Positions 34,503 through 50,071 of a stretch of 64,000 bases of DNA are shown piece after piece. Source of the DNA: Phallusia mammillata (lineage: Eukaryota). Numbering within the stretch: position 1 is the first letter of the stretch; each line of letters starts with the position of its first letter. The DNA is taken from contig OZ281497.1 of the NCBI GenBank assembly GCA_965637545.1, positions 5,952,001 to 6,016,000 on the forward strand, written 5' to 3'. The notes below the pieces were generated by a model. The model was not told the origin of the DNA and did no database searches. It saw nothing but the letters and a program-made list of their open reading frames with translations. The position numbers and the translations under genes were made by a program.

Positions 34503-34595
34503 ATGTTGATGTTTGTGATGTGTTTGGCTTGTTGTCTTGGAATAACACAAGCACAAACAGATTTGGTTAATACAACACATAACCACTAAATACCC
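34503..34595 (+). pseudogene. Frameshifted duplicate of the signal-peptide exon (unit C1)
   Basis: 93 bp vs 94 bp in B; AACCACTAAA vs AACCTACTAAA gives ...HNH-TAA stop before the GTAAG donor. Confidence 0.85.
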
Positions 34596-34691
34596 GTAAG
34601 TGAACTAAAAACTAGTTGCTTTGAACTTTATATACTGTGCATTGCGATATTAACGAGAAATATCTCATACTAAATTAAGTAACAATTGGTG

Positions 34692-34823
34692 AATATATTC
34701 ACTGATGATGACAATGGTTTTTGTCGAAACGTCTGTTTAATAAAATGAATACGTTTTATTCTACTTCGCTGGCAATTTGTTTTCTAGTAAAGCTACTATA
34801 TAAGTCCGTGTCTTGTGTACCTA
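34692..34823 (+). mobile_element. 132-bp insertion with a minimal hammerhead-ribozyme motif (Penelope-like element terminus)
   Basis: Absent from C2; 8-bp TSD AATTGGTG (34684-34691, 34824-34831); CTGATGA-T-GACAA-tggttt-TTGTC-GAAA-CGTC at 34702-34733, followed by AATAAA. Confidence 0.75.
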
Positions 34824-35103
34824 AATTGGTGGTAATAATGACAATGCACATACAGTTATGGTTGCAAGTGTACATGTTAAATTTGAGGTTAATTGCAGGT
34901 ACAAAATGCTTGTTTTGGAAACAAGTCTTATATTTTGCAATGATAGTGATTAGAGAAAGCAAGTTTCAATAACATTTATTGAAAATTTGAGCCAAATAGT
35001 TAGTGTTGTCAAACGATCGTTATATTGCTTCTGCAACATCCAATTCCGTCATATATCGACATGATTGGATATCTGTCGTTTAAGCATTAAATATGTTTAG
35101 TGT

Positions 35104-48400: not shown

Positions 48401-49269
48401 ATTTTTTTTACTTTGTCAGGCGATATTGATTGAATTCCTAGATTTTGACGTGGAATTTGCCTCAAACTGTATTTATGACTACTTGGAAGTTTACGATGGA
48501 ATACAATTGGTAAGTGTTTTGTTTTATTAAAAACACATTTGATTAGTTGACAAACATTTCAATAAAAAGTAAAAAGTATTACAACATTTGTGTTTATCTT
48601 CCATTTATTTGGATCTCTGAGTTTCCGCAGGAAGACTACAGAAAAATTTACAACCCTACCTTTAGTGCGACTGCGATCTATAATCTACTAACCACGGTAA
48701 TTTTTTAGATATCTGGAAGACTGTGTGGCAATAATCTCCCACCCAACTTTATTGCCTACTCGACAATATTACGCCTTGTGTTTCATACCGATTATATCGT
48801 ACCGTCAACTGGATTTTTTATCTCTTGGACAACATCAAGTGAGTAGTTTTAGCATTTTCTTAACTTACTTGATTTTTATCTATAGTTTGGATGACCAGCT
48901 CATTGTCTTTTCTTGACTTAAGAAGCGTCTATACCTTTAGATTCCTCTATAATTTACAAGTCTTCAGAGTTTTTAGACGTTGATGGTGCCCGATCCTTTG
49001 CAAAATATTTGTAGGACCTTTTAACTTTTATCGGAATATTGGCTTGAAATCCGTTTTAGGCAAATATCGTTTTTTTACCACCTTGACAAATGTAGTGATT
49101 AGTGTATGTAAAAGGGCCACGGAAGGCAACCATATTTAGTTGCTTTCGTGGATTATGTTTTTTTTTAAGTGTGGGTATATTAATTTTACATTTTGTTTAG
49201 ATTTAACCATGCCAAACACCACCACCAGCGTTCCAACTCCGCCTACTACCGTCAATATTACTGTGCCAG
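36456..49269 (+). CDS. Unit C1 coding exons: CUB-LDLa-active protease-CUB-LDLa-inactive protease-CUB-Thr/Pro
   Basis: Exons 36456-36580, 36867-36956, 37201-37342, 37553-37663, 37947-38008, 38543-38703, 39029-39121, 39384-39538, 39702-39859, 40089-40230, 40420-40443, 40522-40643, 40803-40886, 43920-44043, 44220-44333, 44538-44599, 44731-44882, 44945-45195, 45911-46056, 46331-46475, 46933-46959, 47534-47649, 48420-48509, 48709-48838, 49201-49269. All are open and in phase; begins and ends in phase 1. Confidence 0.88.
37001..37082. mobile_element. Tc1/mariner-type micro-MITE, C1 copy
   Basis: CAGTAAAC...GTTTACTG termini flanked by TA on both sides. Confidence 0.7.
38201..38362. repeat. Foldback palindrome (~70-bp arms) built around a hammerhead-like core, C1 copy
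   Basis: Arms TTTGATCAAAAA..TGCCAAGGTGCTGGTG..CGACAAA and TTTGTCG..CACCAGCACCTTGGCA..TTTTTGATCAAA; core CTGATGA-T-GACAA..TTGTC-GCAA-CGTC (GAAA mutated to GCAA). Absent from B. Confidence 0.85.
41368..42221 (+). CDS. Harbinger Myb/SANT-like DNA-binding accessory protein (probably frameshifted)
   Basis: Exon 41368-41541 and exon from 41603 give ...AWKIVTTM|[29 protein letters not shown]...KTGGG (MSANTD/Myb_DNA-bind_5-type pattern). The 3' part carries a basic NLS-like KAKRRRR and a Gln-rich coil. The second intron is uncertain and there is a frame break near 41957. Confidence 0.8.
42529..43675 (-). CDS. Harbinger (HARBI1-like) DDE transposase, 3 exons, ~340 aa, apparently intact
   Basis: Exons 43675-43169, 43109-42856, 42790-42529. 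Motifs [15 protein letters not shown]|[26 protein letters not shown]|[10 protein letters not shown]. Intron 1 is GC-AG and intron 2 is GT-AG. Confidence 0.92.
45493..45883. mobile_element. hAT-type MITE, C1 ortholog of 22079-22441
   Basis: TIRs CAGTATTTCTCAACC / GGTTGAGAATCACTG; TSD CTTTAACT/CTCTAACT. Confidence 0.8.
46586..46882. mobile_element. hAT-type MITE, C1 ortholog of 23167-23502
   Basis: TIRs CAGTGTTTTTCAAC / GTTGAAAATCATTG; TSD TTGTAAAG/TTGCAAAG. Confidence 0.8.
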
Positions 49270-49978
49270 GTATATATATATATATATAAAGCAGAAAAAG
49301 TTGCATGAATACATACACCAGGGGTCGGCAACCTTTTCTACAACGGGAGCCGAAAATAATATCAGCAAATTGCGACGGACTGGATTAATTTTCACTATTA
49401 ATTCTGGTTATATCATTTTTCATTTGTTGTGTAACTATAAATTTAAACCAAACTTCAAGCAGTAAAACTGCATTAATGACAATCTTTTCAAAACCGGTAT
49501 GGCAACACTTGAAACATTGCTGAAATGACGATATTTGCGTTCACACGTGTGTAAAGTTGTCTGTAAGATAAAAGCTGGCGATTATAACAGAGCAAAAATA
49601 GTATTATTCCACACAAGTACAGAGATAAAGCGAAGAAAAAAAGCGTTGTTTTCACCTACAATTGTTTTTGTTAGTAGAAACTTATCTGAGAAGCCCAGAT
49701 CGCTGTTGGTTCACGCGTTCGGTTTAGTCCGAATCAGGAGCTGCATGCTATTTGTCGTCATAGTATAGTCATGAGGAGCAAACCGTAAAAAGTGACGTAT
49801 TTTCGCGTAATAGGGGCTCGCATTTAACCTTTAGAGTAAAAATTTTCCGACAAACGTTGGAAAAAGGGGTTATTTCTACGTTGGCGCTCAAAATTTTCCA
49901 CAACTGATATTGTGGCTCATTGCAGTGCAGTGTCTGCAGTTCAAAGCAGTCAGTACGCAAACTAATTTTTATGCAACG

Positions 49979-50071
49979 ATGTTGAATTTGTGATGTGTTT
50001 GGCTTGTTGTCTTGGAATAACACAAGCACAAACAGATTTGGTTAATACAACACATAACCTACTAAATACCC
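49979..50071 (+). pseudogene. Frameshifted duplicate of the signal-peptide exon (unit C2)
   Basis: 93 bp; ATG TTG AAT TTG TGA (one T lost from the run in B's AATTTTGTA). A downstream in-frame ATG would leave only [12 protein letters not shown] as leader. The deletion is in a homopolymer, so a base-calling error is possible. Confidence 0.7.

Follow-up and report, generated by a model that had tools for sequence, protein, structure and literature searches.

A tandem array of CUB-LDLa-protease units in Phallusia mammillata that may be read as one chained polyprotease gene with redundant inner start exons

Introduction

On contig OZ281497.1 of the Phallusia mammillata assembly GCA_965637545.1, a stretch of 64,000 nucleotides (positions 5,952,001 to 6,016,000 of the forward strand, hereafter the window; GC content 35-38%, in a genome of 240 Mb) carries several tandem copies of a multi-exon unit that encodes a signal peptide, CUB and LDLa domains and two domains of the S1 protease type. 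First exons of inner copies have single-base deletions that break the reading frame of the signal peptide, and the exons behind them are open. We asked whether these copies are separate genes, some of them dying, or parts of one gene in which the inner start exons are no longer needed. An initial annotation of this DNA had taken the second view, proposing that the duplicated signal-peptide exons alone had decayed, each by a different 1-bp deletion, under purifying selection on the downstream exons and none on exon 1, as a read-through model would predict.

Our analysis points to a chained polyprotease gene with redundant inner start exons, in which the start of one copy (C1) is dead and the starts of two others (C2 and A) are shortened and possibly used; we would put the chances of this reading at about even. 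Read-through transcription and splicing are what we infer here, from the anatomy, the phases, the frames, the lesions, the crossover behind C2 and dN/dS ratios well below 1, all of which can be read from the DNA itself.

Results

Array layout and exon model

Repeat and self-alignment analysis of the window, with the 50 kb past its end analyzed as well, located the unit three times in the window, always on the plus strand, with first exons that start at 13720 (copy B), 34503 (C1) and 49979 (C2). A fourth unit, copy A, lies past the window end, with its exon 1 at 1,186-1,278 nt beyond it, and is followed by additional CUB and CUB-LDLa-protease modules, all of them headless. B, C1, C2 and A are near-identical modules of about 15 kb, arranged head to tail, and a stop signal between the copies is absent. 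The main features of the window are the following.

13720 to 13813, plus strand: exon 1 of B, an intact signal-peptide exon with its ATG at 13720, a second in-frame ATG at 13735 and a phase-1 donor GTAAGT
15388 to 25949, plus strand: exons 2-24 of B, encoding CUB, LDLa, predicted active S1 protease, CUB, LDLa, protease-like domain, CUB and Thr/Pro linker, open over 2,844 nt
26618 to 33801, plus strand: three further CUB and linker modules of B (2.62-kb tandem repeats of four exons each), open
33733 to 33801, plus strand: last linker exon of B, with a phase-1 donor GTATAT
33802 to 36455, plus strand: B-to-C1 junction, made of spacer, C1 head, C1 exon 1 and intron 1
34503 to 34595, plus strand: exon 1 of C1, frameshifted
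36456 to 49269, plus strand: exons 2-24 of C1, open over 2,844 nt with every splice site retained, the exon 7 donor moved by +3 nt (38703/GTGAAC) and exon 23 changed by -3 nt
40929 to 43882, no strand assigned: PIF/Harbinger-type transposon in intron 13 of C1
49270 to 51475, plus strand: C1-to-C2 junction, made of spacer, C2 head, exon 1 and intron 1
49979 to 50071, plus strand: exon 1 of C2, with a shortened T-run
51476 to 64000, plus strand: exons 2-23 of C2, open, with 99.2% identity to C1 apart from one patch (exons 7-10)

Exon 23 of C2 (63915-64044) crosses the window end and its exon 24 follows at 407-475 nt beyond it. C2 is thus not truncated, and each unit has 23 exons behind the first, not the 25 and 24 counted for C1 and C2 in the initial annotation, whose figure of about 5.7 kb for their coding length does fit. 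Within B, the region 24116-34218 consists of four tandem 2.62-kb repeats, each corresponding to one CUB domain plus Thr/Pro linker on four exons; all are open, and repeats 2-4 are about 99% identical among themselves.

A search with exon 18 against a library of 1.84 billion proteins found no close tunicate protein model, only distant fish-like proteins of the polyserase type with 31% identity, and the exon model was therefore built de novo. Open segments of B that are conserved as protein in a more distant copy, D, were chained through AG/GT sites that keep the frame, which gave 24 exons per unit. BLASTP of all open segments between the copies was also tried, but the copies resemble each other so closely, introns included, that its output had too much noise for defining exons. 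Searches were made with single exons, and the joined frames served for frame checks and dN/dS only. Extra exons were sought in intron 1, where no conserved open block was found; the frame passes directly from exon 1 into exon 2.

In order, a unit encodes a signal peptide, CUB, LDLa, an S1 protease, a further CUB and LDLa, a second domain of protease-like type, CUB and a linker rich in Thr and Pro; Pfam matches confirmed the CUB, Ldl_recept_a and Trypsin domains exon by exon. The first protease domain matches Pfam Trypsin on exons 7, 9 and 11 and presents TAAHC, DIAL and GDSGGP in B, C1, C2 and A; with this His/Asp/Ser triad it is classed as an S1A (chymotrypsin-fold) serine protease, and in the PDB it matches chymotrypsin, enteropeptidase and TMPRSS2, all of which are S1 proteases. 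The second protease-type domain (exons 17-20; 21238-23070 in B) also matches Pfam Trypsin, but has TSASC and GDEGGP in all four copies, with the catalytic His replaced by Ser and the catalytic Ser by Glu, and so lacks the His and Ser that define S1A enzymes. Its dN/dS is 0.15-0.21. Judged by these residues, each predicted active protease is paired with a conserved inactive protease-like domain, and in the exon model a single unit would already be a polyprotease, with two S1-type domains in one open frame.

Exons 2-24 add up to 2,844 nt (947 codons) in each of B, C1 and C2 and to 2,847 nt in A, and they are open in all four copies, as had been stated for C1 and C2. Every exon of B projects onto C1, C2 and A, with AG and GT retained apart from a shift of the exon 7 donor, and the only length changes are +3 nt in exon 7 and -3 nt in exon 23 of C1 and C2, all in frame. 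In the exon 7 change, common to C1 (38695-38710), C2 (53706-53721) and copy A, the GT used in B and 2 nt were lost and a new GT lies 5 nt downstream, for a net gain of 3 nt that turns VDFLST into VDFLYLS and keeps the frame.

First exons of the inner copies

Exon 1 of C1 has 93 nt, against 94 in B. The T after AACC is missing (between 34579 and 34580, outside any homopolymer), and the frame from the ATG at 34503 runs into a TAA at 34587-34589, before the donor GTAAGT. A rescue was sought in this exon, and no alternative in-frame ATG or donor was found, leaving C1 with the kind of disabling, unrescued lesion that marks a pseudogene. In exon 1 of C2, AATTTG stands where B has AATTTTG, the T-run being shortened at 49987-49989, and the frame from the ATG at 49979 stops at a TGA at 49991-49993. 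Both deletions and both stops are as first described. The C2 deletion is not private to that copy, since exon 1 of copy A carries it letter for letter.

The deletion shared by C2 and A sits between two in-frame ATGs. The second of these (49993 in C2) overlaps the TGA and opens a frame that stays free of stops as far as the donor and still encodes the hydrophobic core that is conserved; the predicted leader has 12 residues, with a hydrophobic core of 8. This is short, yet it would lie within the possible range of signal peptides. From these frames, exon 1 of C1 alone is certainly dead, whereas the starts of C2 and A are only shortened and may still be used.

Nine heads of this family were compared, namely the inner heads C1, C2 and A and six others (Z, B, D1, D2 and two further away). 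The first ATG is present in 9/9, and the frame that starts from it has been lost in all three inner heads and is open in the six others. If the 8.8 kb of coding sequence of C1, C2 and A were equally free to change, both of the independent frameshifts would hit the 282 nt of inner first exons with a probability of about 0.001. As a family rule, absence of the second ATG was considered and rejected; the intact heads D1 and D2 are without it.

Apart from the lesions, exon 1 cannot be called decayed, for it is unusually conserved. From the second ATG onward, B, C1 and C2 share a core of 62 nt without a single difference (13735-13796, 34518-34579 and 49993-50054), and A has one change in it. Between B and the C-type copies, the 15 nt before the second ATG differ by 20-27%, the 230 nt upstream of exon 1 by 15-16%, and the first 100 nt of intron 1 by 13-17%. 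At 15% divergence, 62 unchanged bases would be expected by chance with a probability of about 4e-5, and about 6 changes would be expected at the usual coding rates of the gene, so that the core is more conserved than the remaining coding sequence. Either strong constraint in every copy or recent conversion would account for it. The proposal that exon 1 is free of selection is thus partly right, with the qualification that its core stays identical between flanks that differ by 13-27% and that the C2 lesion leaves this core translatable.

A further ATG, out of frame, precedes the first ATG by 8 nt (13712-13726 in B, ATGCAAAGATGTTAA; likewise in the other heads) and opens an upstream open reading frame of 4 codons that overlaps the start codon.

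Unit junctions

The linker exon runs from phase 1 to phase 1, and in every unit the exon 1 donor and the exon 2 acceptor are also in phase 1, with GAA as the junction codon. The linker donor of one unit thus matches the exon 2 acceptor of the next, and the inner first exon between them has no acceptor, so that by phase the copies could be joined as conjoined genes are. B, C1 and C2 each lack a stop codon and a terminal exon of their own. At none of the three unit junctions do the 900 nt that follow the linker exon contain AATAAA or ATTAAA; ATTAAA copies occur only in the internal repeats of B, and this absence is weak negative evidence.

The linker donor (CAG/GTATAT) has to be spliced inside B, between the four CUB and linker modules, and inside A, toward the further headless modules. 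A chained model that runs from exon 1 of B through its extra repeats, C1, C2 and A to the next CUB of A comprises 108 exons and 4,344 codons and contains no stop, the B-to-C1 junction becoming a single intron of 2,654 nt under read-through. Past copy A, a long exon-like frame reaches its first stop about 24.5 kb from the window end, with ATTAAA and AATAAA 0.3 and 1.0 kb later. The anatomy fits the read-through model to which the initial annotation had referred; for the multi-unit chain B-C1-C2-A, the phases, the open frame and the absence of a stop or canonical hexamer amount to compatibility.

Selection on the downstream exons

The comparison of B with the C copies, which had been named as a check, gave dN/dS = 0.20-0.22 for C1 or C2, at dS = 0.25-0.27, a span of time that is mostly older than the lesions. 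In exons 2-13, the ratio among C1, C2 and A was 0.17-0.28 (P <= 0.004), and across all comparisons with power it lay at 0.15-0.28. In the older comparisons, no exon indels were present where 5.8-6.2 were expected from the intron rate (P = 0.002-0.003; for C2 versus A, 5.8 expected and P = 0.003). Purifying selection on the bodies of the units, as had been proposed, is clear at these older levels (B versus C, and among C1, C2 and A).

Between C1 and C2 this proposal is left without power. The two bodies differ at 28 exon positions (14.5 nonsynonymous, 13.5 synonymous; dN/dS 0.30), of which 15 fall in a patch in exons 7-10; divergence is 0.98% in exons versus 0.82% in introns, hence not lower in exons, and there are 0 exon indels versus 2.9 expected (P = 0.056). 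The changes derived in C1 number 6 nonsynonymous to 7 synonymous, against an expected ratio of about 3.5 to 1, in a sample of few events that includes conversion patches.

History of the copies

The history of the array was read from three-way informative sites among C1, C2 and A and from pairwise divergence profiles. C2 agrees with A, and C1 is the odd one, over the spacer, exon 1 and the greater part of intron 1 (56 sites versus about 6); from about 36.9 kb onward, in C1 coordinates, C2 agrees with C1 and A is the odd one, and in between all three are nearly identical. The C2 head is 93.7% identical to the C1 head and about 99% identical to the A head. This pattern makes C2 a crossover product, with an A-type head on a C1-type body, as would result from an unequal exchange between the first introns of A and C1. 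It follows that the two lesions belong to two old head lineages, about 6% apart, and that the head of C2 came from A through the crossover, with the lesion already in it; the independent decay after duplication that was first suggested does not hold.

The PIF/Harbinger-type transposon in intron 13 of C1 is also present in C2 (about 56142-59095) and absent from B and A. It contains DDE_Tnp_4 in three open pieces on the minus strand and a Myb/SANT-like open reading frame on the plus strand, and its two copies show 3 differences over 3,033 intron positions. A transposon restricted to C1 and C2 fits the crossover history and dates the split of C1 and C2 to after their split from A.

In the exons 7-10 patch that distinguishes C1 from C2, the introns are 3-5% diverged, and the patch looks like gene conversion. 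Copy A is itself a mosaic, C-like in exons 2-13 (about 97%) and B-like in exons 14-24 (94%, versus 81-90% to C).

Discussion

A chained gene and its rivals

In the explanation that we favor, unequal crossing-over would have made the tandem copies B, C1, C2 and A of the 15-kb module, and splicing would carry a transcript from the B head through C1, C2 and A in a single open frame, up to a 3' end behind A. An inner first exon, having no acceptor, would be removed within an intron of 2.2-2.7 kb, as in read-through (conjoined) genes. The inner signal-peptide exons would be redundant in such a chain, and it is because of this redundancy that the first-ATG frame would have been lost in all three inner heads. 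The heads of C2 and A, with their conserved second-ATG frame, may still act as alternative starts. More tentatively, and at somewhat less than even confidence, we would describe the locus as a gene caught growing, in which four modules of 947 residues and the extra modules would make up a single protein, longer than 5,000 residues and with at least 8 protease-type domains, under one outer promoter. Its inner first exons would be at the first step of loss, their cores held constant perhaps via alternative promoters that give nested shorter polyproteases. The type of event is already known, as gene growth or fusion by tandem duplication and read-through, and no new kind of mechanism is called for.

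Several observations weigh against a chain, and most of them suit the main rival, less probable than the chain, in which the units are separate genes of a young tandem array, each with its own head and with polyadenylation in the spacer after the linker, C1 being a recent pseudogene and C2 and A functional from the second ATG with a 12-residue signal peptide. C1 and C2 are so close (about 0.8%), with exons as diverged as introns and an indel deficit at P = 0.056, that C1 could be a young dead copy, the case that the initial annotation had itself named as one that would refute its view. The absence of two canonical hexamers is compatible with polyadenylation, and TATAAA-like strings stand directly after the linker donor, where unspliced reading into the intron meets a stop after 4-7 codons. 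Gene conversion is evident in the array, and it can mimic a low dN/dS and erase lesions. The inner heads, moreover, appear undecayed: their donors are intact and the conserved core begins exactly at the second ATG, from which C2 and A can be read without a stop up to the donor. This would fit heads in use now or recently. On the other side, the canonical poly(A) hexamer is lacking in the 900 nt after the linker at all junctions, and the same linker donor needs splicing within B and within A. The first ATG, which C2 and A would have given up, is kept in all nine heads, two intact heads do without the second one, and damage is found in 3/3 inner heads versus 0/6 of the others. The changes derived in C1 also still lean synonymous.

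The chain could also be real and its heads in use together, the B head giving the longest protein, the C2 and A heads shorter ones from the second ATG, and the C1 head non-productive RNA only. Such nested alternative promoters seem improbable to us as the full account. They would agree with the core and donors of exon 1, which are perfectly conserved across heads save for the one change in the core of A, with the open second-ATG frames of C2 and A and with a chain that is open throughout; an ascidian gene of the ovochymase/proacrosin kind has also been reported to give short and long mRNAs from one gene (PMC9265791). Against them, B and C diverge by 15-16% over the 230 nt upstream of exon 1, as much as in introns, so that a constraint on promoters is not visible. 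That the deletions are errors of assembly or sequencing, and all heads intact, is very improbable. The C2 site is a short T-run, and there is assembly trouble nearby, where a gap of 200 N abuts an inverted copy of part of B with 99.6% identity; but the C2-type deletion is identical at two places of the assembly, in C2 and in A, the C1 deletion lies outside any homopolymer, and a second contig with these heads, as a haplotig duplicate would give, was sought and none was found.

Relation to known systems

Ascidian ovochymase (HrOvochymase) combines protease and CUB domains, with one protease domain inactive (PMC9265791). Like this protein and the vertebrate ovochymase/oviductin polyproteases, the locus encodes a signal peptide and several S1 domains among CUB domains, one of them without a catalytic triad. 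It differs in having CUB plus LDLa before each protease, as in the stems of matriptase and enteropeptidase, in a chain that would be far longer (at least 4,344 codons) and in modules that are near-identical recent copies, and the likeness described here is one of domain make-up. Human polyserases carry two or three S1 domains per polypeptide, some of them catalytically dead (PMC1435904). Polyserase-1/TMPRSS9, -2 and -3 resemble the locus in this respect, and the best library matches to exon 18 were proteins of the polyserase kind, with up to 14 protease domains in a distant predicted protein. Identity to them is only about 31%, however, they have no CUB domains, and their protease domains are old and diverged, whereas the modules here are 97-99% identical, with relic first exons between them.

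Type II or GPI-anchored CUB-LDLa serine proteases such as matriptase and enteropeptidase share with the units a stem of CUB and LDLa before the S1 domain and the activation site Arg-Ile-Val-Gly-Gly. Here, an N-terminal signal peptide takes the place of their signal anchor, the protease is paired with an inactive protease-like domain, and the units are chained in tandem.

Conjoined genes, or transcription-induced chimeras, are formed by read-through between same-strand neighbors, as Akiva et al. 2006 and Parra et al. 2006 reportedly described. As in those, an upstream exon would be spliced to the exon 2 of the following unit, a first exon that lacks an acceptor would be skipped, and the phase match that this requires is present. 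Conjoined genes are defined by transcripts, whereas the present case was read from genomic sequence; its partners are also paralogous, and the upstream units have no terminator of their own.

If RNA confirms the chain, the locus would be a clean and datable example of how a multi-domain extracellular protease grows, by duplication through unequal crossing-over, absence of a terminator between copies, phase-matched exons and first exons made redundant. It is also a warning for annotation of this genome, as gene callers are likely to split or merge the copies arbitrarily, and to call C1 a pseudogene or report C2 and A as N-terminally truncated.

Neighboring sequence

The next gene past the array, D, carries two heads, D1 at about 32.6 kb and D2 at about 33.1 kb from the window end. 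Each is an intact signal-peptide exon whose frame is open and whose donor is GTAAGT, and 512 nt separate the two. Upstream of B, a segment of 4,479 bp at 8027-12504 on the minus strand is an inverted copy of B 15901-20376 (from the end of exon 3 to exon 13), with 99.6% identity; it ends exactly at the 200-N gap at 12505-12704 and is either a genuine palindromic duplication or an assembly artefact. Further upstream, at 5387-7787, lies the paralogue Z, with an intact signal-peptide exon and two CUB exons (7311-7436 and 7704-7787, with 69% and 43% identity to B), which is cut off after its third exon by the inverted copy.

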